64,000 nucleotides of DNA from Epiperipatus broadwayi (GCA_028023455.1 JAQFVV010000005.1:930001-994000), one strand, 5' to 3'; shown: positions 7,130 to 63,766, numbered from the stretch's first letter. Made by a program: numbers and translations. The notes: generated by a model from the sequence alone, not told the origin.

Positions 7130-7795
7130 AAACTCTCCATACAGTAGTACACTCAGTGCAAGCTGGAGTAATCAATGGATGCAAGAAACTTGCAACATAA
7201 AATCCCTATCTAGGGCCTATTCATTCATATCTCCAGACTAGTTTCTAGCTTGTGACTTTCATCAGTGAGAAGCCTTGGATCTGAGAGCACTGCATCTAGA
7301 TCTTAAAATTTAATGCAACCCTCCAAACAGCCACCTTTTACCTTATTAGATAACTATAAAGCTTTGAGTCCAAAATGAAAACACAATCATGTTTTCAATT
7401 CAAGCTTATTAGCTCGTATTTTGTATATAAATCTGAACTCAGTTCAGCATCCGCACTTTTTAGTATCTTTGGTTCTTTAGTAACCACAATCACCATAATC
7501 CTATTAAGTAGGATGTTTATTAAGCCACTAAACATTACATGATCACCATTCTTTTTGCTGACACAAGCTCAGTGCAAGCCAGAATAATCAATGGATGCAA
7601 GAAGGTTTGTGCATACATCCCTATCTAGTGCCTACTCATCCGATATCACCAGACTAGTTTCTGGCTTGTGGCTTTCATAAGTGAGGAGCCTTGGCTTGCA
7701 CTGAGTGGTGCTACTGTATAGAGAGTTTAGCCTTTGTGCAAATAGCTCGTGTAAACAAAAAAATAGTGATCATGTGATGTTTAGTGGTTTAATAC
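7130..7795. mobile_element. Retrozyme-like fold-back insertion (antisense ~1.3 units + short sense arm)
   Basis: Antisense copy 7130-7694, then sense cttgcactgagtgg...gatcatgtgatgtttagtggttt. The switch occurs at a tgg microhomology (~7692-7694). Confidence 0.85.
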
Positions 7796-8594
7796 AATGA
7801 TATTAGTTGTATATAGAACTGCTATTTTATTTAATTATGTGGAAGTTACTCTCTGACAACTTATTGATACTATGTAAAGGCATTAAAAAAGATTCATTTA
7901 AAGACATTTTAAAAATACAATGGCAAGATCATAAGTCAATCAGTAAATAAAATCTGTTATTGTAAACCCACATTTTCATTGGATTGGACTTGTAAAGTGA
8001 ATGAACAACAGAAAATTTCCTAAAACGATTTATTATGGTAGACTTGTACATGTTTTCATGGGAGTGGCTACCCTGTTTACGTTACTAGGATTATCTTAAA
8101 AACATTCTAAAGAAGTGCAGTTTTGATTATTTTCATTGGAAAAATGTAACAAAAAATCAGATACATTTGCAGGGATGTAGTTAGCTGTGATGTTGAAATA
8201 TTTTATAAAAAATAGTTTTCTATGAAAAAGGTTAAAAAAGGGCACCACAAAATATCAAATAAATGTAAAAGACGGATCAGAATGTTCTATATGTGGATGT
8301 ATTTGTGGTTCACAGATAAGTTCGTATAGTCATCACAAAACTTATCTCTAGTTTTTTTCTTGAAGTTGAAATGACCATACTCAGTTACAAATGGCTGTGC
8401 TACCTTTGCCCATTTAAAGGAGAATTTACAGAATGTGAATAATGTGTTCAATGCAATATATAGTCTTTGATTTAACAATTAATGTCAGAAAAAACAACTC
8501 CTTTATGAGCCATTTTTGCTTGAATGGGTTATTAACTCGAGAATGTGAATCAAATGACTATAAAATCTACATTAATTGCATTTAGAGTTATTAC

Positions 8595-8985
8595 ACCTGT
8601 GCAGTTTGGCACAGTAGGTAAAGCATCAACCTTGGGATCATGAAATCATACTATTGATTCTGGTGCATACAGCTCTGGTTTTGAACTTGAACTCCTGAGT
8701 AATAAAGACTTATGCCTTTTTTTATCCTGTGCAGTTTGGTGCATTTGGATAGAGCATCTTGGGATTAGGAGGTCCCAAGATTGATTCTGGTGCTCACAGT
8801 TCTGGCACTCAAACTTACGAACTCCTGAGCAACAAAGCTTTTAATTTTTTTTTTTTTTGCCCTGCATAGTTTGGAACAGTTGGTAGGATATCTGAATTGG
8901 GATCATGGGGTTTCAGGATCAATTCTGGCACTCAAACTTCTTATGAACTTCCAAGCAATAATGCCATTAGCATTTTTTTTATTTC
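8595..8985 (+). mobile_element. Tandem trimer of a ~130-bp tRNA-derived SINE-like unit
   Basis: Three units start cctgtgcagtttgg / cctgcatagtttgg at ~8596, 8727 and 8860. Each has an A-box-like D arm, ttggga anticodon-like loop, a B-box-like attgattctgg / gatcaattctgg, a shared gaactcctgag tail and a T-run. Confidence 0.65.
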
Positions 8986-8999
8986 ACCTAATTTATGAT

Positions 9000-9430
9000 A
9001 TAGAAGTGAGATTCTGCATCTATAGATGCAGGATAAAACGTTAGAAAAAATTTATTTAAGAATGCTTCGTAAAATTCTAAAAATACAATGGCATAATAGC
9101 AGCAATATATTATTCATTTTGTTTGATGAGAATATAACGGCTGCTATTGTAAAATCACATCTTCATTGGATTGGACAATTGAAATGAATGAATGATAAAA
9201 AATTATTCTATAAGGAACTGGAGTAGGTTTTTCATAGAAGAGGTAAAACCCATTTAACTATGAAGATTATCTCAAAAACATTGTAATAAAGTAAAATGCT
9301 GATTACCTTCTATGAAAATATGACTGATGATAGGATACAAGGAAGATCTGTAATTAGATAAGATATTGAAGTAATTAAAAAAAAAGTTTGCAGCGGAGAA
9401 AATTAAATTACGACATCATAAAATATCAAA
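9000..9430 (+). mobile_element. RTE family B 3' fragment
   Basis: Homologous to 7865-8280 (aaaatacaatggca..., cttcattggattggac = LHWIG). Confidence 0.75.
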
Positions 9431-10455: not shown

Positions 10456-10999
10456 CTCACCAATTCTTATACTTAAGAAGGTTGTTAAAACAGTAGTGAC
10501 TCTATTACAATAATGCTATCCACTGTATGGAGAGAGTTGGTACTGTTTTAACAGCCCGTGTAGCGTAAAAAATGGTGATTGTGATGTTTTAGTAGTTTAA
10601 TACCAATCCTGGTTTAAGGATGATGGTGACTATGGTTATTAAAAAACCAAAGACAGCAAAATGTATAAATAATTAAGTGAGTTTAAATCTATATAACTAT
10701 ATAAGAAAATAAGCTTAGATTGAAAACATTATTGTATTTTTATTTCGGACATCTAGTTTTATAGTTAACTAAAAAGTAAAGATGGTTGCTGGAGGGTTGC
10801 ATTAGATTTAGTAATGCCAATGATACATCCTTGTTTGCTCAGCTATGCATTTCACTAATGAGGGCCACAAGCTAGAAACTAGTTTAGGGATATTAGATGA
10901 ATAGGCATTAGATAGGGATTTTGATGCACACATCTAGCATCCATTGATATCTATAGCTTGCATTGGGTGTCACTACTGTATGAAGAGAGATGCTACTCT
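10456..10999. mobile_element. Old, diverged retrozyme-like fold-back insertion
   Basis: Short antisense arm 10456-~10505, then ~1.1 sense monomer with mutated core CTAATGA..gaaactagtt. Flanked by tttaactcta at 10446-10455 and 11000-11009. Confidence 0.75.
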
Positions 11000-12170
11000 T
11001 TTAACTCTAAATTCTACTGGAAAAGGTATACAAATCCTAAGCTTCCCTAAAGTTAGCTTTATTTTATAGATTTTACTTTAGATGTATTGAATTTTATGAT
11101 TGATTCCAAATTTTATTTATATAAATTTTGGAGCAGTGAAATTTTAATGTACAAACTTTCTCAGCATTAACTTCTTAACAATAATATATTATGTATATAT
11201 AGATCTTGGAAGACTAGTCATTGCAAAATATATTACACAATATTCAGTGTTGTAAATTTTGAACATTTTATATATGTATATATTTAAAGGCCTATAGTAG
11301 GTAGTCCTTCAAATCTATGTCTTTCTTTGATATCATTTCCCATAATTCTAATATTTTGTAAACAGTGAATGTGGGATAGCAAACAAGTAAACTTGAATAA
11401 GAACTTTATTCTTACTGAACAGTGTTAAATGCTAGTTTAAAACAATCTCCAGAACATTCAAAAATTTACTTTAGCCAATAATTGATGGAAAGGTTCTTGT
11501 ATTATTGATGATCTTCAGAATTATTAGAGGTCTTCAATTGTAAAAGATGCTTTGTTGTTGATCACATTAGTTTTACAACATCCATTGAAACAAAATATTT
11601 CAATATATTGTATATTAGCTTTTGGGATATGAAAATATCAAACCAAAAAATCATTGTGATCATTTTTAAACATTGTTGATTCTTTGTAGGATAAAGGTCT
11701 CTCCAAGTTCAATCCATCTTCTCCAATTTTTAGTCTCTCTTCTCCACATCACCTCAGAACACTTCCTTGTTTTCTTGTCCATCTCACATATGGTCTTTTT
11801 CTAGGTTTTGCTTGGAATTCAGTTTAAACAATCACCTGCCCATTTATTATTATCTCTTCTAAAATTATGTCCAATCCAGCCCTGCTACAGTCAATTAATT
11901 GTTTCAATGATATCAGTGATACATGTTTGTTCTCAAACCCATGTATTTCACTTTCAATATCCTCATATTTCATTGAGGGACAGATTTCTCAGTTCCATAA
12001 GTAAGAATTCATTCTTTCAAAACATAGGCATATTTCTTTTTAATATTAGATTATTTTTACCAAAAGTATTCCATCTTAATTTAATTCTACAATTAATTTA
12101 ATCTATATTAAACTTTTTATTAATATATTATGCTTTCACCTGTATTATTAATTTAACCACGATATTTGTA

Positions 12171-12353
12171 TTTAAAACAGGCAAAACTCTCTATACATAT
12201 TGCCACTCAGTGCAAGCCAGAGTAATCAATGGATGCCAGAAGGCTTGTGCATAAAATCCCCATCTAGTGCCTACTCATCCAATATCCCCATACTAGTTTC
12301 TGACTTGTGACCTTCGTCAGTGAGGAGCTTTGGATCTTAAGTAGTGATCATGT
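12171..12353. mobile_element. Short retrozyme-like fold-back insertion inside RTE-A
   Basis: Antisense arm with CTGACGA core and GUA triplet, plus a short sense gtagtgatcatgt arm. 10-bp TSD gatatttgta at 12161-12170 and 12354-12363. Confidence 0.85.
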
Positions 12354-13603
12354 GATATTTGTAATCGTTAACTTCTTCTAATTCATGATTACCAATGTTT
12401 ATTTTCTTCTTCTGAAAAAATCCAGTGGACATTACTTTGATCTTTTTAACTTTTTTTTTTAGTTCTACTTTTTTACTTTCATCTGATAACTCTTACATCA
12501 TTTCCTGAAGCTCAAAAACCTTGTTTGCAAAAACATTGTGTGCAAAATCTAGATGATTTAAATAATCCCCATTTATTTTTGCACCCTTAGCACCCCATTT
12601 TAATTCACAAAATACATGTTGTAGAAATGGAATAAATAACCTTGTTATTTTCTCAATGATTTCTTAGTATCACCATGTAATTTAATCATATCTGCTGCAT
12701 TCTGATAAAGATTTTTCAGAATAATATCCGGGGTCTATATCTTGATGATTCAATGCTTTAATAACAGCAAAAATGCTTATAAAATCAACTGCCTTTTCAT
12801 ATCTACAAATTGAAAACATAATAACTCATATTCATTGGTCCTACCTATTATTTCTCTTAATATTTGGGTCTGACCAACTGTACTAAAATCATTTTTAGAT
12901 CCAGTTTGTTCTTTTTGGTTGGTTAGAATCCAAAATTTGATGTAAATAAATGGTAAAGATTTTGTATAGAACTGACAGAGAATCTACAAGTCTGCAATTT
13001 CTATGATCTTTATCACCTTTCTTAAATATCAATATTTCAATGGCATTTCTTCCAATTATTTGGTATGTCTTTATCATTCAAATATTTTATATAGAATTTT
13101 GCCAACTGTTTTTTTTTTTTTTAATTTCTTCAGCTGCTTCTTTTAAAATGTAGACAATTCCAACATTTCTTGGAGCTTTTGCCTTCTACATAAATTTAAT
13201 TGTATGTTTCACTTCTTTTAAAATGCTGGTCAATTTGAAAGATGTAATAACTGTAGGGAGTGTTTTGTTTTCTTATTCTTTATTGCTATACAATTTTTTA
13301 ATAAATTCTTCCATCCAATTCATGATGTCATCCTCTTTTTAGCAATAAAGACATCTTTTCTTTATATTATAGAATAACTTTTCTTCCAATACTAAGATAT
13401 TTTTCTGCACTTTTGAGACTTTTATTCATTTCTATAACTTTCCTTGCCAATTCACAATTATATTTTATATCATTAACTTTTTTTCATAGTCTTTTTAATG
13501 GATCATTAATTTTTTTTATATATTCTTTTTTTTCCTTCAATATCCTTGTCTAAATAGAAAATTTACTGGTACTATTTTATAAAATTGTAGATATTCTATT
13601 TTT

Positions 13604-13854
13604 AAGCCAATAAACATCACACGATCACCATTTCTTATGCTTGCTTATAACTGTTATTAAAATAGGCAAAACTCTCTATACGTATTGCCACTCAATGCAA
13701 GCAGAGTAATCAATGGATGTCACAAGCCAGAAACTAGTCTGGGGATATTGGATGAGTAGGCACTAGATGGGGATTTTATGCACAAGCCTTCTGGCATCCA
13801 TTGATTACTTTGGCTTGCATTAGTGGGAATAGGTATAGAGTTTTGCCTGTTTTA
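13604..13854. mobile_element. Retrozyme-like fold-back insertion inside RTE-A
   Basis: Antisense arm 13604-~13718 and sense arm ~13719-13854. Perfect 13-bp TSD atattctattttt at 13591-13603 and 13855-13867. Confidence 0.9.
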
Positions 13855-14849
13855 ATATTCTATTTTTCTTTATGGATTATTTTTTTAAACATTTTATATT
13901 GCTTCTTTTCTTCAAAAATTCTTGTCTAAATAGAAAATTCACTGGTACACAGCTGTTTTTTTGTACCATCTACTTTTTTTTGTAGTTCCTGAGTATTAGT
14001 TAACTTTATCATTCTTAATGATTATAATGAAAGCTGAACCATCTTCAAAATCTGTTAATATTTTAAATGATTTGCAAATTCATGAAGGTTAGGAACACTA
14101 ACTGTTGTTATTAATACTATCTTTCTTAATAGATATTGTCTCTCTAATTTTGCAATTATACTTATAATCACTAATCAATAATCATTTCTTATGTGTATCT
14201 TCAAATACATATTGTCTGTTAATTATAATATAATCAAATTCTGCTAGATCTTCATTTGAATTCTTCTATATCCATTTTTTTTTCAATGAAAGACTTCATA
14301 TAGTTTTTTCCTGAAAATTCCACAAATCTTTGTCCTCTATCATTTCTGCCACCATATCCAAATTTATCCATAGCACTCTCATTTTTTGATCATTTATCAA
14401 TTCTAGCTTTAAGATCCCTATAACAATTTTAAAATGTTATCTGATCAAAAACATTTTATATATCCATATAAAAATCCTCTACTTCTTTAATACAATGAGA
14501 ACTTATTGGAAAATAATCTTGAATTATCTGCATTTAGAATCTTCCATTAATTTGAATAATAAACTACTCTTACCATTCTGTCTGATATCAATATTCACAT
14601 TGTTGTTCTTCCACATTTTATTTATAATAAATCTACTCCACTTGTGCTTCCAATATTTGCACCTTTGTAGTAAAGTAGTCTTACTTTTTAAATCAATTTG
14701 TCTCTTCACCTTATCTTCTAGTCTTACAAAATCCAGTAATGTTCTATTTAATGTTTTCAATTCTTTCAATCTTCTTTCATTTGAAAGTGATCTGCAGTTA
14801 TAGGAAGCTAAATAAAAGGCAACATAAAATGGCAACCTGGGTCAATAAT

Positions 14850-16836: not shown

Positions 16837-17337
16837 TATATAAGTTATTACAGCAAAATCAAGGAAGTGGTGAATTGTTTTACTTGTGAATTGTCAGAAT
16901 AAATCTTTAGCATATAATAACAACATTTCATTCTTCTTACACTTTAAAGCAAAATATATTTATTTATTCTTTACAGTTTCGACTGTTCCTGGCAGTCGTC
17001 AGATCTACAGAATTTAGACATTATATCAATACAACCACATTTCATACATATGTCTATTATAATCTTACAATTTTATCAACTTAATTATTAAGAATATAAA
17101 AAAGATAGAAGAGTTATATAAAAAAGAGGGAAAGGAGGAAAATAAAAAGAAAAGAAGGAATACATAGGAATAAAAGTTATGATAGTAGTATAGTAAGGGG
17201 AATTAATAATATTATTAGAAAAATTATTAAAGAATTTTAAAATGATATTAAATATAAGGTAGTGAATAAAATGAAGAAAAATGTAATGGATATTTTAGAT
17301 AATAGGGTATATAAGTGGAGAAAAGAAATATATAAAT

Positions 17338-17632
17338 GGGGTTTATGAGATAGAATGTAAAAAAATGTAAGGATAAAGGGATTACAAATAAATATGTAGG
17401 TGAGATGAAAAATTCAATATATACTACATTAAAACAACATAAATATGATAGAGAATCAGCGGTATATATGCATTTTATGGAGACAGGTCATAAACTAGAA
17501 AAAGAGAATATTAGAATGATAAGTTGTGCAAGTAGTAGAAGAGATAGAAAAATAAGGGAGACAATTTTAATAAAGAAGATAAAACCAAATATTAATAATA
17601 GAGAAGGGGGTTTAAAAACAATTTTAGTATAA
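17338..17632 (+). pseudogene. Penelope-type GIY-YIG endonuclease domain (frameshifted)
   Basis: GVYEIECKK/(+1 frameshift in A7 run at 17359-17365)CKDKGITNKYVGEM..TTLKQH...SAVYMHFMETGH.L...I.MI.....R.RKIRETILIK..KPNINNREG. This matches the PLE GIY-YIG pattern (GVY..C.C..YVGET..R..EH..SA..H..GH..R..E..I..P..N). Confidence 0.9.
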
Positions 17633-18243
17633 AAAATAAATATTAAAAAATGGTAAAAAATAAGTGAAAAATAATAAAAAAAATAAAATAAATAAGTAGT
17701 TTGTACAATAGATAAAAGAGGGAATGGTATATAAATATAAAAAAAGGAAAAGGAAGTACAAAGTATGATGGGATAGAGAAAAAAGTGGAGGAAAGAGAGA
17801 AAAAGTAGAGAATAAGGTAAATAAAAACTAAAAATACATATAAAAATAATTTATAAAATTTAAGTAAATGAAAGAAGCAGGAATAAAATATGGATAAAAA
17901 AGAAATTAAGGAATGGAATAAGATAATAAAAAAACTAAGATAATATGTAGAAATAAGTGAAATGAAAAATAAGGTTAAATATATGAATATAGTAATATAA
18001 GAAAGTTTTTATAAATATTACATTGAATTTCTAAAATTGTGGCAAAAGTAAAAGGTAAATAAATATAAATATAATTAAGAATAAAAAATAAATAAGAAAA
18101 ATAAAGGATAAAATAGAATTAAAAAGTTATAGAATAGTAAGTTTAATTAATAAAGTGACATTAATAATTAAGTTGATAAAATTTTAAGATTATAATAGAT
18201 ATATGTATGAAATATGGTTGTATTGATATAATGTTTAAATTTT

Positions 18244-18290
18244 GTAGATCTGACGACAACTGCTAGGAACAGTCGAAACTGTAAAGAACA
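18244..18290 (+). ncRNA. Hammerhead-like motif in PLE pseudo-LTR
   Basis: CTGACGA (18250-18256), caACTG ctaggaa CAGTc, GAAA (18275-18278), CTG TA. Stem III is minimal and the proximal stem I is weak. Confidence 0.55.
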
Positions 18291-19179
18291 AATAAATATA
18301 TTTTGCTTTAAAGAGTAAGAAGAGTGAAATGTTGCTATTACACGTTATATAAAAAAGCAAAAATAAAGAAGGATAGAGGAAGAGAAAATATTGAAGAAAT
18401 CTTAGCATAGAAAAGATTGAAGATTTAGCACGTCAAGACTTAAATTCAAGAAAATATTCTAACTTAAATCATGTAAAATACAAAGCAACAAATTTATAAG
18501 AAGTTTGTCCAAAAAACAATAAAAATTCTTCCAAATAGATAAAAAGAAAATCAAAGTCTGCAGATAGATACGAGTTCAGAATAATTGAATTCAGAATAAC
18601 TATTTTCATTCAGATCAGTTCTTTCAAACCTAACTATTTCTACAGTGAAGACTAGTCTCAATTCATTCCTGCATCTCCATCAGCAACAATAGATCTTGCA
18701 AAAACCACAATTAAATTTAGCTTCACCCTAGAATTTCTAAATACAACAAAGTGTATGTCAATTACTGAATACAGTACTAAGCCTATAAAAAAAAAAAAGA
18801 CATTAAAAAAAAAAAAATCAAAAAATTAAAACAAGGACCTCTTCACCCAAAAGTTGCGGAACATGCAATTTCATTCAAAAATCAACTGCAATTACTTAAA
18901 AATAAATATATTGCAGCCAGCAACATTTAGTGCAGTAATAAACTTAAGAACTGAAGATTCCTAGTGATTGTCAGTTGAAAGACTGAATGAAACTTTTGAG
19001 CTTAACCTCCCATTTTAGATCTCAAACATCACTTAAATTCTCTTGAGCAACTAACTATATATCATTTCGAGTGTCATCTGATTTCTATTTTCCTAAAACA
19101 GTCAGTGCTATGATTGCTGCATTTAATAGTAATAGTAAAGAACAGCCACTCACAAGTGAATATGGCCAATTCTATCCTC

Positions 19180-22100
19180 CTTCCCCCAAGGCAAAAAACT
19201 ACTCTAAAAATGTTTGTGATAACTATACAAACCAATGTGTAAACCAAAAATACATTGGCATACAGAACATGCTGGTCATTTTTTCTGTTTACTACGTTGT
19301 CTTTTAGAAAAAAAACTTTTCTTTCTGAAATACTTCATGTCTAATGTAGCTCAACAGTATATTTTATTCTCTGCCATGTCTTACCAATGGAAACATTAGT
19401 GCACTTCTTTTAAAATATCTTTGAAATAATCCTTATAACGTAGATGGCCTCCATGAAAAAAACATGGTAAGTTCATCATAAAATATTCTTTTAGGAAGTC
19501 TATTCATTTGTTATATATGTCTAATCCAACAAGGGTGTGATTTTACAATAGTGGAATATACAGTATCACATTCAGAAAATTAAAAAAACATTGATTGGTT
19601 TTATGATCTTGCCATTGTATTTTTAAAATTGTACAGTGCATCCTTAAATGAAACTTTTCTAATATCTTTACATTGTGCTGATAGGATGCCAAGTTTTACA
19701 TTCTTACAATAAAGTAAAATAACAGCTTTATATTATCATCATCATCATTTTCAACCATTATTGATCCACTGCAGGATGAAGATCTTTCCAAATTCAGTCC
19801 ATCTTCTCTGATATCTAGCTTCTTTTCTCCACATTATCCCAACACATTTCATTCATCCATCTCACATGAGGTCTCTTTCTAGGTCTTTTACACTTTATTA
19901 ATATTCAGCATCATTTTCAACTATTATTGATCCACTGCAGGATGGTCTCTCCAAGTTGTCCATCTTCTCTGATCTCTAACCTCTCTTCTCTACATTACCC
20001 CAGCACACTTCCTTATTTCATTCACTATCTCATATGTGGTCTCTTCTATGTCTTTTAAATCTCTTGGAATCCAATTTACGATTTTTCTTCTAGAAATATG
20101 TTCAGCCTAACATGACTTCAGTCGTTTAATTCTTTCAATGATGTCAGTAGCACGTTGTTCTTTTACCCTTGTATTTTGTTTTCAAATTTTTTTGTATATT
20201 TCTTTGAGTTGTTTGAAATTTCTGCATTGTTTTTATGTTAAGTGTCCATGTCTCAGATGCATAAGTAAGAACTGGTAAAACACATTTATTAAAAACCTTC
20301 CTTTTCAAACACAGACATATTTCTTTTTAATATTAAATTATTTCTACTAAAAACACTCCAACCAAGTCTAATTCTATGATTAATTTCATCCATTATGTTT
20401 CCATCTGTAGTAATAATCTGACCAAGATATTTATAGTTGTTAATTTCTTGTAACTCATCATTATCAATCTTTTCTTTTTACTAGTTATTTTAGTTGCAGT
20501 AATTATTTCCATATGATCAAATACTCTGTCCTTTAACTTGTTAAAAGTAGCACAGCCCCTTAAAGCCTTAATATCTAAGTCCCCCATTCTATTTATAAAA
20601 CTACCAAAGTACTTTAACAAGTTTGCATTTTCAAGCTGATAATCATTCAAACTAAAATTTGTTGAGAATTTTTATTCTGTTAATGGCTGGTAGAGACTTT
20701 GAGTTTTATGAATATTAATTAATAAACCAGTCTTTATGTGTTACATTCAAGACATTAAGAACATTCTGTAAATCATCTTTTGAACAAAAATAGAACAATC
20801 ATCAGTATATTATAAATCCAGAATCCAAAAAGATGTTGGAGCAAGTACATAATCTTGTTTGACAGTAGTTTTATTTCAAATGCCTAAGATTTTCCATCCA
20901 TAATAATACCATTTCCTCTCATTCTATCATGTAGAAGTTGTATAATAGGAATAAATTTTGGTACAAACAATACCATGGATCTAACCTACTGACTGAATCA
21001 AATGCCTTGACCAAATCAATATATAAATCACTCTTTCGTTTACAAGACGTTTTTGTATTTACATGACAACAAAAGTCATGCTTATAGTGCTTCTTGATTC
21101 TCTAAAATTACATTATGTCTCCAGTAACCATTTATCTATGATTTGAAGCAATCTTGTTAACAAAATTCTTGAAGGTACATTTGCAGTAGTAGATGATAAT
21201 GATATTCAATGATCATTACTTTAAATTTCTCTATTTCCTTTGTTTTTAAAAATTAGAACTATAAAAGTATCTTTAAGATTGGATAGCACAACATCATGGG
21301 TCCATATATTCCTAAAAAATTCCAATATTTTTGGAGCTAACATATATTTTAAAACTTCTCCAGGTAATTTATCAGGACTTGTAGTCTACTTTTTACACTG
21401 TTTTGATTTCACTAAGCTGGATATGTTTATTTAAATTAAAGGAATAAATAAAATAGATATAAAATTAAAAGTTGCGTCAATTCTTGAATCATTATTCAAA
21501 ATATGATAAAAATATTCCTTCAACCTGTTAAAAATATCATTATCATCATATAAGAGAGTTGTTCCTTGCTGAATTTAACAGGACTGATACTATTTTTCAG
21601 GTCCTTATATTGCTTTCAATGCATCAAAAAAAGATCTAAAATGACTACAATCAATGAATATCCGAATCTTCTTTACAGTTTTAATCCACCAATCATTTTT
21701 AAATCCTATGGTCAATCATTGAATTTTTGCCATTAGATCTCTAAATTTATTATAAAGTTTGACAATTAATCTATTATTCTGTCATGCAAAAATTGCCATA
21801 TTTCCTTTTAATCAAATCACTAGCTAAAAAAAATAATTATTAGAAAGTCCATCATGATTCTTCTCTTTACTAAACATAAGAATAGATTTCCTTGTATCCA
21901 CAGTACACAGTTTAAAAGAATTCCGTACTTCAGTAATATGACAATCCTGAAAATCCAAATTAGAAGTATTAATGTATAATAGCTGTTGAAATTTAATGTA
22001 TGAAAATTCTTTTAGAGAATAAACAAAAATTTTCTACAAATATGATTGAAATATCTGTTTTTTAATGCATCTATCATTTTAATGTTGGAGTATACAAAAT

Positions 22101-22300: not shown

Positions 22301-23391
22301 AGAACCGATGTGTTCAACATATGCTCATATATAAATAATATAAAAAAAAACTCTGTCAGATAGTGAAAATTATTCTACACGAATAAAGTGTGATAAACAA
22401 GCACAAAAACATTAATTCTCTCTCTCAAATACATATATTTAAATGCTACAAATTTAAAAAGAATTGTTTTTTAAAATAATTTTTCAAATTATGATGTACT
22501 GAAGCAAAAGACTAATTACAAACAGGCATTGCAAACTGGAATCATGTAATCTAGTAATTGTATTTGTCTGAAATACTTGAAGTTAAAAATGAATTCATCT
22601 TTAACTTAATATCCAAGTTCTTATTCGAATTGTAAATTAGTCAATAATATACATGTGTGCCCTCCCATAAGAAGCTATAGATTTTAAATAAATAAATTTT
22701 TAATATAGCCTTGCTAAAACAAATGTTTCTCCAAGGCATTGTGACTGAGTCATGATACTAATAGAAAGCGACAGAAAAATCAAGAGAAAAGACATGTGCT
22801 AACTCTTGCAGAATTCCTGCTCTGAGACACCATCAGGCTAAGTTATGCTACCATGATCTAGAATTTATTAACATTTTTGTAAGCATTCTGGCTAATCATA
22901 CTAGAAATATATAATCCTTATAAGTTGAGTGTTACTTATAACAACCAACATTTTGCAAGTTCTGTATTTAATTAACATCTTAATTAAATATTTGATTATA
23001 TTGTCATATTCTTTTACTTTAGTTCCAGCTCATCTGAATTTCTTATAATAAATCACTATAACATTTTTTAATTATATATTTAAAAGACTGTAGCCAATGA
23101 TCAGTACATAGCCCAGCATTCCATGGATTAGTTAAAATTTACATAGAAAATTTTCATTCATAGTTGAGGATTTTTAAGATATTTTGGTAAGTTAGTCAAT
23201 CCATAACTAACGATAATAATATTAATAATTTTTGAAGCTATTTTAAGGTGGAACTGGTTAAGTATTTATTTGGTATTACTATTAATGGAAATAAACAAAG
23301 GCAAAACTCTCCACACAGTAGTGCCACCCTGTGCCAAACAGAGTAATCTATGGATGCCAGAAGGCTTGTGCATAAAATCCCTATCTAGTGC

Positions 23392-23460
23392 CTACTCATC
23401 CAATATCCCCAGACTAGTTTCTGGCTTGTGGCCATCATCAGTGAGGAGCCTTGGATCTGA
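23392..23460 (-). ncRNA. Type I hammerhead ribozyme (intact)
   Basis: Minus strand: atccaa ggc TCCTCA CTGATGA TGGC cacaa GCCA GAAA CTAG TC TGGGGA ta ttggat. Confidence 0.9.
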
Positions 23461-23850
23461 GAGCACTGCACCTAGATCTTAGGATCTAATGCAACCCTCC
23501 AGCAGCCACCTTTTAACTATACTTTACTACAAAACTAGGAGAATGAAATTGAAAACATTGTTAATATGTTCAATCTAAGTTCAATAGCTTATATAGTCAT
23601 ATAGGTCTGAACTCAATTCAGCACCCATACATTTTGGTGTCTTTGGCTCTTAAACAACCATAGCCACCACTATCCTATTAGGCAGGATTGGTGTTAAACC
23701 ACTAAACATCACATGATCACCATCTCTATACTAGCACATAATTGTTGTAAACAAAGGCAAAACTCTCCATACAGTAGTGCCACCCTGTGCCAAACAGAGT
23801 AATCAATGGATGCCAGAAGGCTTGTGCATAAAATCCCTATCTAGTGCCTA

Positions 23851-23920
23851 CTCATCCAATATCCCCAGACTAGTTTCTGGCTTGTGGCCATCATCAGTGA
23901 GGAGCCTTGGATCTGAGAGC
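23851..23920 (-). ncRNA. Type I hammerhead ribozyme (intact)
   Basis: Same core as 23392-23460, in the second monomer. Confidence 0.9.
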
Positions 23921-24814
23921 ACTGCACCTAGATCTTAAGATCTAATGCAACCCTCTAACAGCCACCTTTTAACTCTACTACAAAACTAGGAGAATGAAAT
24001 TGAAAACATTAATATCTTCAATCTAAGCTCAATAGCTTATATAGTCATATAGGTCTGAACTCAATTCAGCACCCATACATTTTGGTGTCTTTGGCTCTTA
24101 AACAACCATAGCCATCACTATCCTATTAGGCAGGATTGGTGTTAAACCACTAAACATCACATGATCACCATCTCTATACTAGCATATAATTGTTGTAAAC
24201 AAAGGCAAAACTCTTCATACAGTAGTGCCACCCTGTGCCAAACAGAGTAATCAATGGATGCCAGAAGGCTTGTGCATAAAATCCATATCTAGTGCCTACT
24301 CATCCAATATCCCCAGAGTAGTTTGTGGCCCATCATCAGTGAGGAGCCTTGGAGCTGAGAGCACTGCACCTAGATCTTAGGACCTAATGCAACCCTTCAG
24401 CAGCCACCTTTTAACTCTACTTTACTATAAAACTATGAGAATGAAATTGAAAACATTGTTAACATCTTCAATCTAAGCTCAATAGCTTATGTAGTCATAT
24501 GGGTCTGAAATTCAGCACTCATACATTTTAGTGTCTTTGGCTCTTAAACAAACATAGCCACCACTATCCTATTAGGCAGATTGGTGTTAAACCTCTAAAC
24601 ATCACATGATCACGATCTCTATACTAGCACATAATTGTTGTAAACAAAGGCAAAACTCTCCATACAACCCATATGACTATACAAGCTATTGAGCTTAGAT
24701 TGAAGATTTTTAACAATGTTTTCAATTTCACTCTCATAGTTTTGTAGTAAAGTAGAGTTAAAAGGTGGCTGCTGGAGTGTTGCATTAGATCCTAAGATCT
24801 AGGTGCAGTGCTCT

Positions 24815-24880
24815 CAGATACAAGGCTCCTCACTGATGATGGCCACAAGCCAGAAACTAGTCTGGGGATATTGGATGAGT
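24815..24880 (+). ncRNA. Type I hammerhead ribozyme (intact core)
   Basis: Stem I TCCTCA (24827-24832) / TGGGGA (24863-24868); CTGATGA 24833-24839; stem II TGGC/GCCA with CACAA loop; GAAA 24853-24856; palindromic CTAG; GUC triplet with predicted cleavage after 24862. Confidence 0.9.
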
Positions 24881-25029
24881 AGGCACTAGATAGGGATTTT
24901 ATGCACAAGCCTTCTGGCATCCATTGATTACTCTGTTTGGCACAGGGTGGCACTACTGTATGGAGAGTTTTGCCTTTGTTTACAATTATGTGCTAGTATA
25001 GAGATGGTGATCATGTGATGTTTAGTGGT

Positions 25030-39082: not shown

Positions 39083-39600
39083 TACAGAGGATTTGAATAC
39101 AGACTTTCAAGCTCCTTCAATCATCCACTGTATCTCATACAACCTATACACATGACCATACATGTGAAAAAGATGAATGAATTTCATGTTTCGTGTTGGT
39201 ACAAATCATCATCTCCTGCACACATATACCAATCTACCCTACACTTCAACTCTTCAGTCATCCATATCATTGAAAATCTGATGATGGAACACCCAAATCT
39301 TTTGTTGGAGGGTAGAGTAGATTGAAGTCTGTCCGTTAAAGTGTGAAGATTTGCTATCTTAATATAAACAGTACTGATTATATATAGGTGTGGGAGATTA
39401 TGATCTGGACCAGCTGTTGAGTGCTGGTTCAGCACGAAATACATATACGTATTGGAGATCATTTATCTTTTTCACATGTGAGTTGTCATGTGTATTGGTT
39501 GTATGAGATAGAGTGGGTGACTGAATGAGCCTGAAATTCTGAGTTCAAATCCCCTACATTACATCTAGATTCTAGGTTATATAAAATATACTTGTATTTA
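39083..39600. mobile_element. Third HHR-bearing element, fold-back insertion
   Basis: Inverted arms ~39085-39240 and ~39375-39558. 17-bp TSD aaattgtctatatataa at 39066-39082 and 39601-39617. Confidence 0.85.
39400..39462 (+). ncRNA. Type I hammerhead relic (A6>U core change)
   Basis: ATGATC tgga CCAG / CTGTTGA / GTGCTG gtt CAGCAC / GAAA / tacatatac GTA / TTGG a GATCAT. Stem I with an internal loop and a perfect 6-bp stem II. Confidence 0.75.
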
Positions 39601-49206: not shown

Positions 49207-49290
49207 ATACCATATAATACTCAATTGTCCAAGCACTTTACTAATGGTAAAAGTAGTAAAGTGCTTGGACAATTAAGTATTGTATGGTAT
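49207..49290. repeat. 84-nt near-perfect hairpin
   Basis: 37-nt arms 49207-49243 and 49254-49290 (one G-U pair, one mismatch) with a 10-nt loop. Confidence 0.9.
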
Positions 49291-49886
49291 ACATTTGGCA
49301 ATGCAATAAGGAAAGAGTAGTTATTTTGTAAGATGTAAGCTGTGATCTTATTCCTGTAATAGAGTTTTTTTTTTTCAGCAAGGTGTTGCTTGTACGTAGA
49401 TTCTTATTTTTTAATGTAGTTTATTTTTTTCAAATGAAAAGGAACTTTGGGTTATATGAATCTTCAATTCCTTAAGAAACATTCATTTTGTCAGTGTTCA
49501 GATTTTTAAAAGTTATTGTAATAGCAAATTATGATGTCGATTGACTGTCACATAATAGTTCTGATGAATAGCATTTGATCATCATAATTTGGTTATTTGC
49601 AATCTCCTTAACACAATTCTATCTTAGCATATTTAGTTACTAAATTATTAAGATCCACTATTAATACTCTATCATAAAATAATACATTCACAAATTGTTA
49701 TCATTATTTTTAAAAAAAAAAAAATTGAATATTTTTAAGCCCCCCCCCCCTTTTTTTTTTTAAAAAAAAGTTTTTTTAATAAAATTATTTATATAAAATA
49801 AAATGCTTAGAAAAGAAATATTTATTAGCACAAAGAATATTTGAACCACAGATATTCAAATTCTTATTGCAATGATATAATATCTT

Positions 49887-50976
49887 ATAAACAAAGCAAA
49901 ACTCTCCATACAGTATTGCCACCCTGTGCCAACCAGAGTAATCAATGAATGCCAGAAGGCTTGTGCATAAAATCCCTATCTAATGCCTACTCATCCAATA
50001 TTGCCAGACTAGTTTCTGGTTTGTGGTCATCGTCAGTGAGGAGCTTTGGATCTGAGAGCACTGCACCTAGATCTTAGCATCTAGTGCAACCCTCCAGCAC
50101 TCACCTTTTATCTCTACTTAATATGAGAATGAAATTGAAAACACAAAAAATATTTTCAATCTAAGTTCAATAGCTTATATAGTCATATGGGTCTGAACTC
50201 AGTTCAGCACCCATACATTTTGGTGTCTTTGGCTCTTTAACAACCATAGCCACCACTATCCTATTAGGCAGGATTGGTGTTAAACCATTAAGCATCACAT
50301 GATCACTATCGTATACTAGCGCATAATTGTTTATAAACAAAGCAAAACTCTCCATACAGTATTGCCACCCTGTGCCAACCAGAGTAATCAGTGAAATGCC
50401 AGAAGGCTTGTGCATAAAATCCCTATCTAATGCCTACTCATCCAATATCCCCAGACTAGTTTCTGGCTTGTGGCAATCTTCAGTGAGGAGCTTTGGATCT
50501 GAGAGCACTGCACCTAGATCTTAGGATCTAATGCAACCCTCCAGCACCCACCTTTTATCTCTACTTAACTACAAAACTATGAGACACCAAAATGTATGGG
50601 TGCTGAACTGAGTTCAGATCCGTATGACTATATAAGCTGTTGAGCTTAGATTGAAAATATTTTTTGTGTTTTCAATTTCATTCTCATAGTTTTGTAGTTA
50701 AGTAGAGATAAAAGGTGGGTGTTGGAGAGTTGCATTAGATCCTAAGATCTAGGTGCAGTGCTCTCAGATCCAAAGCTCCTCACTGACGATGGCCACAAGC
50801 CAGAAACTAGTCTGGGGATATTGGATGAGTAGGCATTAGATAGGGATTTTATGCACAAGCCTTCTGGCATTCATTGATTCTGGTTGGCACAGGGTGGCAA
50901 TAGTGTATAGAGAGTTTTGCTTTGTTTATAAACAATTATGTGCTAGTATAAGATAGTGATCATGTGATGCTTAATA
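49887..50976. mobile_element. Retrozyme-like fold-back array (~1.55 antisense monomers + sense arm)
   Basis: Unit starts at 49889 and 50335; switch at ~50583 (aga microhomology). Intact sense HHR CTGACGA 50783-50789, GAAA CTAG TC 50803-50812. Perfect 12-bp TSD atataatatctt at 49875-49886 and 50977-50988. Confidence 0.95.
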
Positions 50977-54100: not shown

Positions 54101-55305
54101 CCATTTTTATCGCTTCTTTTACTAAAAAAAAAAAAACTTTATAAGTAATCCTCATTTCTTGCCTCATTCTCTCTTTTTTTCTACTTCCTCTTTAGTCAAA
54201 CTAGTAAAGAAACTGGTTTCATGAGTCTCTCATGCCATTACTAATTGACACTCATTATGACAATGGGATTGTATATATGTGCAACTGCGTTTTCATTTTT
54301 TAATCATATATGTGCCAATTTAGATTCAAGTCTTTTTTACTTTTAATTGTCTGTCTTGCTTGTTATTTATTTTTCCGGGAGTGGAAACGGTTTTAAACAT
54401 TTATGAATTTTTACTAGAGATGATGATAATAAATTAACTTTTATTTTTTGTAAATTTTTATTCTTGCTTTCACTTCTTCATGAAATGTCTCATTCTATTC
54501 TAATCATCATTTCTCATTTTCTTCATAATCTTATTCACACTATCTTCTAATTTTAATGTAGTATTGCTTGTTTAATTTTTTTAAATTTTTTTATATGGAA
54601 ATCTGTTTTCCTTTATTCAGATGATTTTCTAAATCAGGTTGGCACTCCCATTCACTATGGGATTAATTTTGTAGTTTGCATATCTATTATGTAGATCATA
54701 CAGAGAATGTGGTGGATCTTGCCTAAACCAAACCAACAACCTCTTTATTTTGGATCTAATTTTACAGTTAGTATAATCACCATGTAATAGATAAATAATA
54801 CAGTGAATGTGATGATTTTTCTAAACTTAAATCAGTGACCCATTTTATATATTATTGAACTAATTTTGTAATTTGTATGTATAAAATGTAAAGCATACAA
54901 AGAACAACATGTGACTTGTCTAAATCAGATCAGCAATCTCTTTTCATTTTGTATTTAATTTTATATGACCATCATGTAATATGAAGATCATATAAATAAA
55001 AGAAAAAGTTTGATAAATGAAGTTTTGAACTTTGCACAAAATAAAATCTAAATGCTATTTTGATATTACAATACAAGTAAATGGTACAAATTACTGTTGA
55101 CAACATAATGGTAATATATCACACACATAATCTGAAAATTGTCTCAGATCAAGAAAAAAAATAACTGTCTTAAATATAAACACAAAAAGGAATTATTTAT
55201 TTTTAAAATTCTAGATTATTACTTTACAGTTAGTTATTTTTACTGGCTACCCTCAAATGTTTGTTACTCTTTCTGTGATTCGTGAATTATAAGTTGCTAA
55301 TTCTT

Positions 55306-55424
55306 GGTTTAAACTGTGTAAGATGCCATTTTTGTATATTCATTATCCAGTATATTTTTACTAATGGTTTAAACTGTTTAAGATGCCATTTTTGTATATT
55401 CATTATCCAGTATATTTTTACTAA
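55306..55424. repeat. ~60-bp tandem duplication
   Basis: tggtttaaactgt(g/t)taagatgccatttttgtatattcattatccagtatatttttactaa occurs twice. Confidence 0.95.
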
Positions 55425-55717
55425 TAGACATATTTTACAACTTTGATTCATATAATATAAATAAAGATATAAAATAAACCAGTCTTTTAAATAACATCCT
55501 CAGGGCGAGCATTTTGTCAAAGAGGAATAATGAAAGCAGTTCTCGCAAGGCTTGACATTTATGGGCTAATGAAAGCTTGATGCGTTTTTTATTTGATGGA
55601 AGATCAGCAAATACTGATCTATATTGTTTGTTAAAGCAAATTGTTTTTTGTCAATAGAGATAGTCGTTTTATTTATCTATGTTTGTATGTTCATCCATCT
55701 GTCATTCCATTCACATG

Positions 55718-59370: not shown

Positions 59371-60305
59371 TTCCTTGCAGTGTTATATTTTTATTTCATG
59401 TGTTTTATTGTGGATATGAATTATTCCAACTCATTGTGAGATAAAAATTAAGATATTGATTTATTAAACATTATATATATGACTGATAAAATTCATACCT
59501 CTAAAACAAGTCAAAATCAAAACATAAATAGAAAATCATTGAGTGAATATGCAGGTGCTTAAATTTCTAACTTCTTTGACAATTGATAATGCCCATGAAA
59601 TACATGTACAGTGAAAGAGATTGGTCTGGGAAATTCTACACTGGACGATAGCACATGATTTAATTACAGGATTTGGAAGAGGGCATTCCAGGTCTGATTA
59701 GTTACAATTATATGCTAAAAATTGTCTTATTAATTAATCACTGCATGTGCTATTAAATGTCATAGTAAATGCATGTCTTTTTACTTGAAAAAACATTTTA
59801 AATATTGAAACACTTATATAAAGTAATAAATAGTTATAAAAATTGGAGTTGCAAAAACAATTGTTTTTTAATAAGCATTTAATATTTAAATGGTTTCCTG
59901 TTGATTTCACTTTTTTAAAATATATTGTTAAAATAGAGTTTGTTGTTTACTTTAATGACTTATTTTTAACTTTTGCTACAGTATAAAATTACTAATACTG
60001 TAGTTTTTCAAAAGTAAAAGAAAAATGCACAAATATATTTTAAAGTAAAATTAAGAATTGTAAGATAAAAATGAATAATGTTATTAACATAGATCACTAG
60101 AAAATTTGAAATTATAAGAATTTTATGAAATAGCAATAAATGGTTGGAGAAGTAAATTGGCCTAGATTTAAAATATGTAATAGAAATGAAGATGTTTGAT
60201 GAATGGACATATCAAGTACTTCTCATTGATGAAGACCCAAAAAGCAGAAAATATTTGGATGTCTAGTTGGTACTACCATCTGATATCCATTGATTACTCA
60301 TACTT

Positions 60306-60643
60306 GTTACTTTTGTATAAATCTCCTCATATACACTTTAGTGCAATTTTTATACAATTCTTCCTTTATCTTTCTAACAGTTTTGACTGTCCTTCAGTCT
60401 TCACCAGAACTACAACATTTAAACATATAATCATATAACCATTATTTTATATACATATTTTACATTATTATATGATTAAATGTTGTAGTTCTGATGAAGA
60501 CTGCAGGACAGTCGAAACTGTTAGAAAAATAAAGGAATTATATAAAAACTGCATTAAAGTGTATATAATATTTATAAAAAAGTAATGCACATGAATATAT
60601 GAAGAAAAATACAAAAAAAGTAAAGAAGATATAAGAATAATAA
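60306..60643. mobile_element. Penelope-type pseudo-LTR fold-back (no ORF) with a hammerhead-like core
   Basis: Inverted arms ~60306-60437 and ~60467-60586, similar to the 18161-18347 pLTR around the core. CTGATGA 60491-60497, A, GACTG cagga CAGTC, GAAA 60514-60517, CTG TT. Perfect 11-bp TSD tactcatactt at 60295-60305 and 60644-60654. Confidence 0.8.
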
Positions 60644-60799
60644 TACTCATACTTACATATAGGCTTTAAAATATTGTTCTATATTATTGTTAATATGAAT
60701 GATAATAAAGAAATTATACTAAAAATGGCAGTGCTAAGAAGATTTGTAGCTTTGTAATGGGGATTGAAGTTTATTTTGTGTTTCTTATTTATTTAATTA

Positions 60800-61800
60800 G
60801 AATATGATTTTTTTTTAAACATCATAAAGAAATCTATAAAGATTCCAAGTAGTAAATAGATAGACTAGTGGTTTTATTAACTTTTTTAGTTCTGCCACTT
60901 ATCTTCATAGACTGTAGTCATTGATTGTATGATTCATGAGTTGTGCTTTCTGTAGAAATTCTAACTAGTAAATAGATTAATGGCTTTATTGGCTTCAATT
61001 GTGCTAGTTTTCATAGATATGTTTGATTATGCCGACATAGATTAGAGGACAATTCCATTTATGAAGCAGATGAGCATATCATCTGTGGATGATTCTGAAT
61101 CTGTTTCCAGTAATATTCTGAAAAATTTAATCCTGTTGGTTCTATATTGAATCGGGGTGGGGGTGGGATATTATATGGAATCCCAAAAAGAGTCTATTGT
61201 TTACTTGATAATTCATCTGTTACTTGAAGAAATTCTAAGTTGAATATCCAGAAAGAGCATCTTGACTTGAAATAATTCTTAAGTAGTGAGTAGTCAATCT
61301 TATATACTTAACTTTTTATCCATTTTATATAAGGCTTTTTATATTTAGAAGAGAAATATGTGACCCCCTCCCCTCACGAAACCATTACACGGCAATAGAC
61401 TTGAATGTGGCAGGAATATTTCTCATGATAATATTTGAATATAATGGATATTTTTACAAGTACATATTCTTCAAACAGGTAACAGTATTATCTGTAGATT
61501 CATTGAAAATAGGTTTATGAAATACTCATCAAATTTTGTTTGAATCAGAAGTTTGGTTGATTAGAGAAAGAGGAAAAAAGAAAGATTAGAGGCTTTAGAG
61601 ATGGGGGATTTGTAGAGATTAAAGAAGATAAGTTGTAAGAATAGGATATAAAAGTTAGAAATGTTGAAAATTAGTGAAAAAATGAAAGATGAATTTTAAA
61701 AAATGGAAGAGAAATTGAATGGACATTGTAGAGACCCATTAATGTCTATTGTGATGGTAATCATCAATAAATTATTATTGAATATAATGTTTTAACTTTT
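60800..61800 (-). mobile_element. Highly decayed L1/Tx1-like RT fragment
   Basis: Minus-strand remnants resembling Q.GF..R.I.DN, QG..LS..FNL and TDDMLI (~61070-61095), in the expected order. Confidence 0.35.
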
Positions 61801-63543
61801 AATAAACTAATATTGTAGTTCAAGTAAAATATTTTGTCATATAATTTGATCAAGTTGCAGATTGAAGAGCCAAAGGTTCTTGTGTTGAATTCCCATTGAG
61901 AAAATAGTGTTACTTCACTTAACAGTCTATTATATTGACGTTTAACAATGAGTCATCTTTGAAACAGTTAACCATATAATGAATAAAAAAATGATAGAAT
62001 ATATTTTATTTTAAAAGTTTTTTTGAATAGAAATGTCATTTCAATTGAGTTTTGAAATGTCATTGATTGATATAAGTATTAGTGGTGAATTCAGATAAAA
62101 AAAAAAAATCATATTTTTTAATGTACCCATGAATTTCTTTGTCTTTTCCTTCACTGTCTCTCATTGGAGTTATTATCCTTGATCTGTAGTGGTCTACTTA
62201 AGGGCTTTTGTATTTTTCTCTTACATTTTTATCTTATATACATTATATTTGAAAGTAGAAATTAATCTTTATTTCTGCTTGTTAGTTTTGTTGTTGTTGT
62301 TGTTGCAAAACAATTAGCTATTAATGAAATGGGTTTTTTTGGGGGGAGGGGGGATCTTTAAAAAAATCATTTAATTAAAATTTATCATAGACAAAAATTA
62401 GAAATTAGCTCCCTTGTTTATGTGAGTAGATTACATCTGTTCATGGTGTTGAATTTGTAATTTTATTTTAGAGGAAATATTTGTAATTTTATTTTAGAGG
62501 AAATATTTGTGTTTCTTGATATATATATGTGAGGTTAAAAAAAATAAAAGCCTTAGACTGCTACAGGAAAATGACTTTTCTAGCATATTTTCACAAAAAA
62601 ACCATCTGAAGTGCATTACTTTCAGGCTAGTCAATTTTTGATTGGTGAAAATACCACAATAATCTGTAAATAACTGGCTTATGTTATGGACTTTGTGAAA
62701 AAAAAATTAAGCTTGCTTAGATATTTTCAGTTACCCAAAAAAACTTCCAAATCCTCCCAATTAAGAAATTTTTCTTTAAGAAGATTAAAAATTATGGTCA
62801 AATCACTATTTTCTTTTTTAAAAAAATCTTAATCAAAAAAACCATTTTGATTATTGTTCCCAATATTTCAACGCTTTATTGTCTTTTTTTTAAGGGTGCA
62901 AATAATATAAAACTGGAAAGAAAATATTAGGTGTAAATTAATGGGGGGGGGGTGATATTAAAATTTTCAGAAGTATAAATGATACATGTTACATACAATT
63001 TTTTTTTTTTAAAATTAGTATATTAAAAAGCAACTTAGTTTATTCTTTTTTTACAGAAAAAAAAAAAATCTTTAAAATAATTAAAATTTTTTAAAAACAT
63101 TACCATGATTTATATTTTTCCAAACCATTTTCTCTTTTAAATTTAATGCCTATTATTAAAACTTCCAATAAATTAAAAATCCAATCACTCATTATCTACA
63201 TATACAATTTTTTTTTAATTCTATAAAATAAGCAATTGTTAATAAATATTAAAATAAAATTATTTCTGATAAAGATGTGGATGTGAATACATGAATAAAA
63301 GCAGCTATCTTCTATAACTAAATGAATAATAATGAAGCTTCAGATGGCTTTAAAGAATGGATTATCTAAAAGATAATCTAGAGTCTAAACAACGTAAATT
63401 CCATTGTTCATTTAAAAAAGAATAAGCAGGATTAAAATACTTGTCTTTAGCAATTACTTACCTCTCAATAAGAAGGAAGTATGATCAAATTACTGAAAGA
63501 ATAGGTTAAGCAAACCATATTAGAAGTGCTAATATCAGTGATA

Positions 63544-63625
63544 ACCAATAAAATATCACATGATCACCATTTCCTATGCTTACACAATCTGTTATAAACT
63601 GTACAGAGAATTTGCTACTGTTAAT
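63544..63625. mobile_element. Minimal retrozyme-like fold-back (terminal arms only)
   Basis: Antisense accaataaaatatcacatgatcacc..gttataaac plus sense tgtacagagaatttgctactgttaa. TSD tatcagtgata (63533-63543) / tatcaatgata (63626-63636). Confidence 0.7.
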
Positions 63626-63766
63626 TATCAATGATAGTTAATTAGCAGTGAAGAGAAATAGTCTTGATTTAATATTTTTGGTTTTGTCCATTAGGAAAGA
63701 TTTTTGTTTGCCAAACCATATCTTCACTATTTTTTTAAGTCTTTCTATTCATTTACTTTATTTTAG

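Follow-up and report, generated by a model that had tools for sequence, protein, structure and literature searches.

Insertions of a 456-nt hammerhead retrozyme in Epiperipatus broadwayi carry the footprint of Penelope-like elements

The 64,000-nt stretch of the Epiperipatus broadwayi genome analysed here (GCA_028023455.1, JAQFVV010000005.1:930001-994000; hereafter the window, with positions counted from its first letter) contains several insertions of a 456-nt repeat carrying a hammerhead ribozyme (HHR). This repeat is most probably a non-autonomous animal non-LTR (long terminal repeat) retrozyme, that is, a non-autonomous Penelope element resembling a pseudo-LTR (pLTR), copied into the genome by the reverse transcriptase (RT)/GIY-YIG protein of Penelope-like elements (PLEs), which we infer to act in trans on the retrozyme RNA. 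The insertions share an anatomy which is regular across the genome and recurs in the PLE copies of the same genome; its reading in enzymatic terms draws, by analogy, on PLE enzymology described in the literature. Mobilisation by PLEs is well supported but already published, and the repeat is no new class of element: Cervera & de la Peña (2020, NAR; PMC7229834) considered PLEs the likely mobiliser of animal retrozymes, and a recent preprint (Li et al. 2026; 10.64898/2026.07.22.740005) describes retrozymes as PLE derivatives hijacking PLE enzymes, on the basis of co-occurrence across species and of Xenopus pLTR homology. A preliminary description of the window, which regarded the mobilising partner as not settled, thus understated a literature in which PLEs have been a strong candidate since 2020; its proposal that the retrozymes employ the PLE RT and endonuclease rather than RTE machinery is supported by the polarity, the target site duplications (TSDs) and the one-sided tails that they have in common with the PLEs of this genome.

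The retrozyme unit and its hammerhead

Self-comparison of the window revealed a non-coding repeat with a period of 456 bp at about ten loci. Unit positions are numbered from the HHR cleavage site (between ...CTGATGAtggccacaagccaGAAActagTC and TGGGGA), the sense reference being the reverse complement of 23412-23867. Each unit carries the hammerhead core CTGATGA-tggccacaagcca-GAAA-ctag-TC, cut after its last base, with a helix I of 6 bp; helix III consists of a single A:U pair closing CUAG, and ACTAGT is a 6-nt palindrome fit for dimer formation. The ribozyme is a minimal, dimer-forming type I hammerhead of the PLE type, and not a classical type I with a real helix III; minimal HHRs, with a 1-bp helix III and a palindrome, have been tied to PLEs in the literature (PMC7761336). 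Rfam detected no hammerhead in the window at its gathering and E-value thresholds, and the minimal HHR was located by pattern: the core pattern has 9 matches in the window against 2.06 expected, and intact CTGATGA...GAAA...TC motifs are spaced 456 nt apart in the arrays. Among genomic copies, the strict motif is matched at 50 of about 81 HHR sites, and the core is the best-conserved part of the unit (98-99.8% identity, compared to about 96% for the whole unit), the most variable positions being 286-360.

The folding of the retrozyme monomer exceeds that of shuffled controls (z = -4.8). The GC content of the unit is 40%, in a window of about 28% GC with almost no long open reading frames (ORFs), and the 456-nt reference unit contains no CpG dinucleotide. 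No ORF of at least 110 aa is found in the arrays, which hence do not encode the RT and GIY-YIG domains that define an autonomous PLE; lacking coding capacity, the unit can therefore only be a non-autonomous dependant.

Anatomy of the insertions

When the copies are mapped onto unit coordinates, eight of the ten retrozyme loci in the window prove to be fold-backs: their left arm is antisense (-), their right arm sense (+), and the RNA 3' ends therefore point outward; they are the same eight loci for which this arrangement had been proposed. Some second arms are tiny (17 nt, about 27 nt) or diverged (10456-10571). The loci are listed below, each arm with its outer end, short or long as defined in the following section.

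7130-7795, old fold-back: (-) arm 7130-7694, short end at unit 108; (+) arm 7698-7795, long end at unit 177; about 76% identity to the reference; TSD decayed, ACA(G)ATGATA, about 9-10 bp with an indel
10456-10994, old fold-back: diverged (-) arm about 10456-10571, about 115 nt, long end near unit 152; (+) arm 10572-10994, short end; TSD at 10446 and 11000, exact, 10 bp, TTTAACTCTA
12162-12360, fold-back: (-) arm 12162-12337, short end; (+) arm 12344-12360, 17 nt, unit 148-164, long end; TSD exact, 10 bp, GATATTTGTA, in part overlapping the end of the element
13600-13857, fold-back: (-) arm 13600-13726, long end at unit 174; (+) arm 13721-13857, short end; TSD at 13591 and 13855, exact, 13 bp, ATATTCTATTTTT
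23291-24666, (-) arm of a fold-back: three tandem 456-nt units, outer 3' end at unit 120 (short end); intact HHRs at 23441-23412 and 23897-23868, both (-)
24667-25035, (+) arm paired with the preceding one: unit 262 to 175, long end with tail; intact HHR at 24833-24862 (+)
23280-23290 and 25029-25039, TSD of the 23291-25035 fold-back: TATTAATGGAA and TATTAACGGAA, 11 bp, one mismatch
31107-31534, fold-back: (-) arm 31107-31154, 48 nt, long end at unit 159; (+) arm 31154-31534, short end at unit 120; TSD of 13 bp with one mismatch
49877-50975, fold-back: (-) arm 49877-50584, short end; (+) arm 50582-50975, long end at unit 165; TSD at 49875 and 50977, exact, 12 bp, ATATAATATCTT
63538-63626, small old fold-back: (-) arm 63538-63599, unit 177 to 116, long end; (+) arm about 63600-63626, about 27 nt, unit about 95-121, short end; TSD weak, TAAT(T)ATCA, about 9-10 bp with an indel
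4165-4422, retrozyme copy (-): short end at left; neither second arm nor TSD detected
5751-6567, retrozyme copy (+): 1.8 units, 5' end at about unit 160, 3' short end at unit 128; no inverted arm detected

The TSDs of the window are solid in six of the eight fold-backs, four being exact (13, 12, 10 and 10 bp) and two having one mismatch (11 and 13 bp), while two are decayed; for comparison, an exact repeat of at least 10 bp was met in 0.8% of 2000 random position pairs handled identically. Seven AT-rich TSDs of 10-13 bp had been claimed, of which six hold; the seventh does not, the duplications of the 7130 and 63544 copies being decayed. The microhomology reported at the inner junctions is present as an overlap in most of them, although it ranges from 1 to 6 nt and not from 1 to 3 nt.

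The same anatomy is found throughout the genome. A search of the 5.6-Gb assembly with one unit yielded at least 1883 candidates and 30 loci, 27 of which are independent of the window and of each other: 26 of these 27 have the same -/+ fold-back polarity, and a TSD is found in 23 of the 25 that could be assessed (exact at 10 bp or more in 22; median and mode 13 bp). Over 28 insertions, TSD length ranges from 10 to 17 bp with a median of 13 bp, exceeding the 4 bp of plant LTR retrozymes. The arms span 17-1659 nt, up to 3.6 units, are unequal in length within loci and have inner ends at arbitrary unit positions, amounting to partial tandems with variable 5' truncation. Most inner junctions overlap by 1-6 nt; their positions are not mirror-symmetric, and the junction is different at every genomic locus. 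Since no two loci share an inner junction, each fold-back must have been made anew at insertion; since the TSDs enclose the whole structure, each represents a single integration event and not a post-insertion rearrangement. Neither (GAT)n nor poly(A) is present at any of the approximately 66 retrozyme ends inspected. The target logo reveals AT-richness only, the outermost TSD bases being nearly all A or T.

Two outer ends and a one-sided tail

Every complete insertion, 8 of 8 in the window and 25 of 25 in the genomic set, has one short and one long outer end. The short end, whose sequence terminates in ...GCCTTTGTTT, falls mostly at unit 113-126 (with three outliers at 105, 108 and about 100; the span in the window is 105-130), while the long end, terminating in ...CATGTGATGTTTAGTGG, falls at about unit 152-184, mostly 158-178; in all 25 genomic insertions one end at or below 126 is paired with one end at or above 159. 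Coverage along the unit accordingly drops at about 120 and then at about 170, corresponding to the two classes of ends, and one arm only bears a tail of about 50 nt (about 45-55 nt). If the ends were chosen independently, the one-short/one-long pairing seen in 33 of 33 insertions would have a probability of about 0.5^33. This asymmetry did not figure in the preliminary description.

As for its origin, local folding of the tail region gave no significant structure (z = +1.6), which leaves the idea that a hairpin determines the two start sites unsupported. Twin priming on one and the same RNA was also considered but is not supported: it predicts that the long-tail arm should not be much longer than the short one, whereas it is longer in about one third of the insertions, so that this model accommodates only about two thirds of the arm lengths. 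A separate observation concerns the copy at 5751-6567, whose 5' end (about unit 160) lies inside the tail region; it may mark an RNA 5' end, or be a coincidence.

Penelope-like elements of the same genome

Three remnant elements in the window, two of them PLEs and the third a further HHR-bearing element, are built in the same way:

16915-18397, degraded PLE fold-back: antisense 16915-17091 inverted with respect to 18161-18340, 92.8% identity
About 17330-17632, frameshifted GIY-YIG remnant in the sense arm of this PLE: GVYEIEC...YVGE, by reading
About 18250-18290, degenerate HHR in the same sense arm
18341-18397, 57-nt tail of this PLE, with no counterpart in the left arm
16902-16914 and 18398-18409, TSD of this PLE: AATCTT(T)AGCATA
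60306-60643, PLE pLTR fold-back: left arm with an antisense HHR-like motif; right arm with a sense HHR at 60491-60520 and a tail of about 55 extra nt
60295-60305 and 60644-60654, TSD of the pLTR fold-back: exact, 11 bp, TACTCATACTT
39083-39600, third HHR element: arms 39072-39180 and 39459-39569 inverted relative to each other, the right one with a tail of about 41 nt
About 39409-39455 (+), mutated HHR of the third element: CTGTTGA...GAAA
39066-39082 and 39601-39617, TSD of the third element: exact, 17 bp, AAATTGTCTATATATAA

The antisense-left/sense-right polarity that had been noticed in the GIY-YIG-bearing PLE, in the pLTR fold-back and in the third HHR element is confirmed in all three, as are the exact 11-bp and 17-bp duplications of the latter two; in addition, all three have one-sided tails (57, about 55 and about 41 nt). 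Pfam returned no match for the 75-aa ORF fragment of the GIY-YIG remnant in the window. A sub-threshold Rfam match to MIR7723 at 60340-60555 on both strands (64 and 55 bits, against a gathering score of 200) corresponds to the hairpin of the PLE pLTR and not to a microRNA gene.

Elsewhere in the genome, a profile search for GIY-YIG (PF01541) found at least 10,240 candidates, the longest open frames reaching 901 aa. Adjacent inverted GIY-YIG pairs are in the -,+ order in 20 cases out of 20 and, because the endonuclease is C-terminal, their 3' ends point outward. Some of these PLEs are very young, with arms 99-100% identical: in the fold-back at locus L055 the arms are 100% identical, the TSD is 11 bp and a 71-nt tail is present on the right arm only, while in L060, of the same family, the TSD is 12 bp and it is the opposite arm that bears this tail; three further loci (L059, L046 and L039) have TSDs of 9-12 bp and tails of 53-87 nt. 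Identification of these elements as PLEs relies on PF01541 matches, on motifs recognised by reading and on Atlas neighbours: one long ORF carries YVDD and GVYIIKC...YIGN motifs (by reading), and its Atlas neighbours bear HTH_animal, RVT_1 and GIY-YIG, the clusters being most often molluscan. Pfam hmmscan gave no match for the long PLE ORFs L050:91-1773, L060:580-1773 and L041:1591-3207, even at E = 1; these ORFs are extremely rich in K, N and I, and their GIY-YIG domains are above the cut-off in the genome-wide profile search, so that the compositional bias of this AT-rich genome probably hides real domains from hmmscan.

The HHRs of these PLEs are atypical, and a simple HHR descriptor missed them. 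At L055:2080-2125, about 80 nt upstream of the short end, there is only a degenerate HHR-like motif (CTTGAAAAAGACTAT...ATAGTCGAAAC), whose 3' half resembles the PLE HHR of the window (CTGATGAAGACTG...CAGTCGAAAC) and whose CUGAUGA box is lost.

A proposed route of integration

The features that PLE insertions are known to display provide the frame in which the retrozyme footprint can be read. Craig et al. (2021; PMC8557442) count among the hallmarks of PLEs 5' truncation, partial tandems, a neighbouring 5'-truncated copy in inverted orientation and a tail of 30-40 bp at one end only, features not seen in target-primed reverse transcription (TPRT) of long interspersed nuclear elements (LINEs). 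In the work of Frangieh et al. (2024; PMC11167929), a purified PLE protein was shown to cleave both strands of the target and to extend each of them. It initiated reverse transcription at two neighbouring sites within the RNA, downstream of the HHR, with the sequence between these sites constituting the tail; it preferred AT-rich targets, and its main substrate was unprocessed multimeric RNA. The retrozyme shares with PLEs the 5' truncation, the partial tandems, the inverted copy, the one-end tail, the position of the HHR upstream of the RT start sites and the AT-rich targets, as well as the marks of two internal initiation sites and of extension on both strands; it differs from them in lacking an RT/GIY-YIG ORF, being non-autonomous, and in its strict one-short/one-long pairing. 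Counted from the HHR cut, its start sites are at about 120 and about 170 nt, compared to about 85-92 nt in the Anolis element.

On this model, the PLE protein would cut both strands in AT-rich DNA with a stagger of about 13 bp, and both 3'-OH ends would prime reverse transcription on retrozyme RNA, internally and downstream of the HHR cut, at sites around nt 113-126 and nt 158-178, one per strand. The two cDNAs would then extend toward each other over a variable distance, often several units, and be joined head-to-head at a random position, often with a microhomology of 1-6 nt. The expected product is an antisense arm followed by a sense arm, both with their 3' ends facing out, only one of them extended by a tail of about 50 nt, and the whole flanked by a 13-bp TSD; the process overall would be a dual target-primed reverse transcription by a PLE ribonucleoprotein (RNP), employing the short site on one strand and the long site on the other. 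The strict rule of one end of each class suggests a coupling within one RNP. It may be, and we propose it only tentatively, that completed integrations use two internal PLE initiation sites in strict complement, one per target strand and about 50 nt apart on the RNA, which would imply joint priming of both strands, in one event, by a coordinated RNP that is probably a dimer, the arrays deriving from heterogeneous multimeric RNA and not from rolling-circle copying of a circular RNA (circRNA).

Several points weigh against mobilisation by PLEs or against this form of it. A sensitive blastn search with the unit found no PLE pLTR or 3' homology to the retrozyme among 30 PLE loci, the matches in these loci being incidental retrozyme insertions only (L059, L036). 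In the experiments of Frangieh et al. in vitro, the use of the start sites was equal between strands, so that the strict pairing seen here needs an extra explanation, and the retrozyme tail of about 45-55 nt is longer than the 30-40 nt published for PLEs. The targets are 79% A+T, but the genome is already about 72% A+T, and a preference for AT-rich targets is accordingly weak evidence. Finally, the genomic loci are the best full-unit matches, a sample biased to young copies of at least one unit, and the contrast with RTE-like elements discussed below is drawn from three copies only.

Alternative explanations

An APE-type (apurinic/apyrimidinic endonuclease) LINE, RTE or other, might mobilise the retrozyme instead, the fold-backs arising by twin priming in the manner of L1, since twin priming also yields an inverted and a direct arm within one TSD; RTE-like LINEs are indeed present in the window, and the want of a sequence-sharing PLE among the 30 loci favours the same view. 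However, only a minority of L1 insertions are products of twin priming, and in those the inverted arm begins at arbitrary positions inside the element, whereas the retrozyme is folded back at 26 of 27 loci, with the start of the second arm always within about 10 nt of one site. The LINE copies of the window differ as well:

33310-36108 (-), APE-type (RTE-like) LINE: (GAT)n tail 33310-33318 at its 3' end; GDFNARIG, SDHRLI and RT C-terminal motifs recognised by eye

Pfam gave no match on the ORF fragments of this LINE, hence the reading of its motifs by eye. Sister 3' ends tailed by (GAT)n occur at 19735 and 57760, and at none of the three copies (19735, 33310, 57760) is there an adjacent inverted arm, as had been stated in the preliminary description; retrozyme ends carry neither (GAT)n nor poly(A), while the PLEs of this genome do display the footprint. 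A dependence on APE-type LINEs of the kind known for SINEs (short interspersed nuclear elements) is thus not indicated, the retrozyme having no partner tail and fold-back being the rule and not the exception, and LINE-driven mobilisation appears very improbable. An origin at the DNA level, whether as a foldback or TIR (terminal inverted repeat) transposon or as palindromes formed after insertion by hairpins or replication errors, is suggested by the resemblance of TSD-flanked inverted arms to a TIR transposon, yet it is hardly credible: arm lengths differ everywhere, all inner junctions are distinct and the outer ends are of two kinds, which leaves no fixed mobile element, and enclosure of the whole structure by the TSDs speaks against later rearrangement. 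A snap-back hairpin is likewise excluded, as the inner junctions are not mirror-symmetric.

A different question is which RNA the PLE enzymes would copy. Cervera & de la Peña (2020) proposed that a circular RNA monomer is reverse-transcribed in rolling-circle fashion, in which case the units of an array would initially be identical; in favour of this model are the abundance of retrozyme circRNAs in other animals, the folding of the monomer beyond that of its shuffled versions together with the conservation of the HHR, and the internal position of the RT starts, which is compatible with a circle. Adjacent units within one arm, however, differ by 5.4%, not far from the 7.5% between units of different loci, figures which assembly errors and indels may inflate; in 31% of the within-arm differences both alleles recur in two or more other loci. 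Such shared variants are not to be explained by recurrent CpG mutation, the unit having no CpG, and the TSDs are nearly all perfect. Taken together, these observations indicate that the units were already different when inserted. Multimeric RNA that had not been processed, or else several RNAs, probably served as the template, and not one circular monomer; template switching between different circles could also reconcile a circular template with the divergence, but copying of monomeric circles by PLE enzymes is on balance unlikely, though far less so than either of the origins that dispense with PLEs.

Relationship to described retrozymes and PLE derivatives

In being non-coding tandem units with a type I hammerhead, a low GC content, TSDs longer than 4 bp and coexisting PLEs, the E. 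broadwayi elements correspond to the retrozymes of Cervera & de la Peña; they depart from them in unit length (456 nt here, against the 170-400 nt quoted) and in having the minimal, PLE-type HHR instead of the "classical" type I. The fold-back with its one-sided tail is undescribed both in that paper (PMC7229834) and in the 2020 review (PMC7761336). The preprint of Li et al. contains no analysis of TSDs, fold-backs or tails, and invertebrates are outside its scope; its argument from PLE homology has no counterpart among the 30 PLE loci considered here, where the evidence is the insertion footprint. Among the non-autonomous PLE derivatives already described is MRC1 of Chlamydomonas (Craig et al. 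2021); derivatives of the MRC1 type share 3' sequence with an autonomous family and lack canonical HHRs, whereas the retrozyme has an HHR and shares no 3' sequence with the 30 PLE loci.

The retrozyme family also appears, at 85-99% identity, in contigs of at least nine organisms (coded runs X1-X15), the kind of which, RNA or DNA, is uncertain, and it seems to be common to related species. The break points of the contigs in those runs occur at both termini, at about unit 113 and about unit 174.

Other features of the window

The 3' end of the (GAT)n LINE is tandemly duplicated (19722-19890 and 19890-20057), with a related 3' region at 33290-33466. Unrelated repeats comprise the following:

3087-3264, 85-bp tandem repeat (93%)
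49207-49290, 84-bp palindrome (88%)
55305-55425, 60-bp tandem duplication (98%)

Sub-threshold Rfam matches to snoRNAs in the window are attributed to chance.

Implications

The insertion footprint provides an independent line of support for a hypothesis which had previously been argued from co-occurrence and from sequence homology in frogs, and it recurs at nearly all loci of a genome that contains retrozyme copies by the thousand along with young PLEs. To that hypothesis two refinements are added, namely that the start sites are always paired, one per strand, and that the units of one insertion are heterogeneous when inserted. If the coordinated, two-site priming proposed above were true, the 456-nt retrozyme, devoid of any ORF, would offer a small natural reporter with which to study the second, unsolved half of PLE integration.

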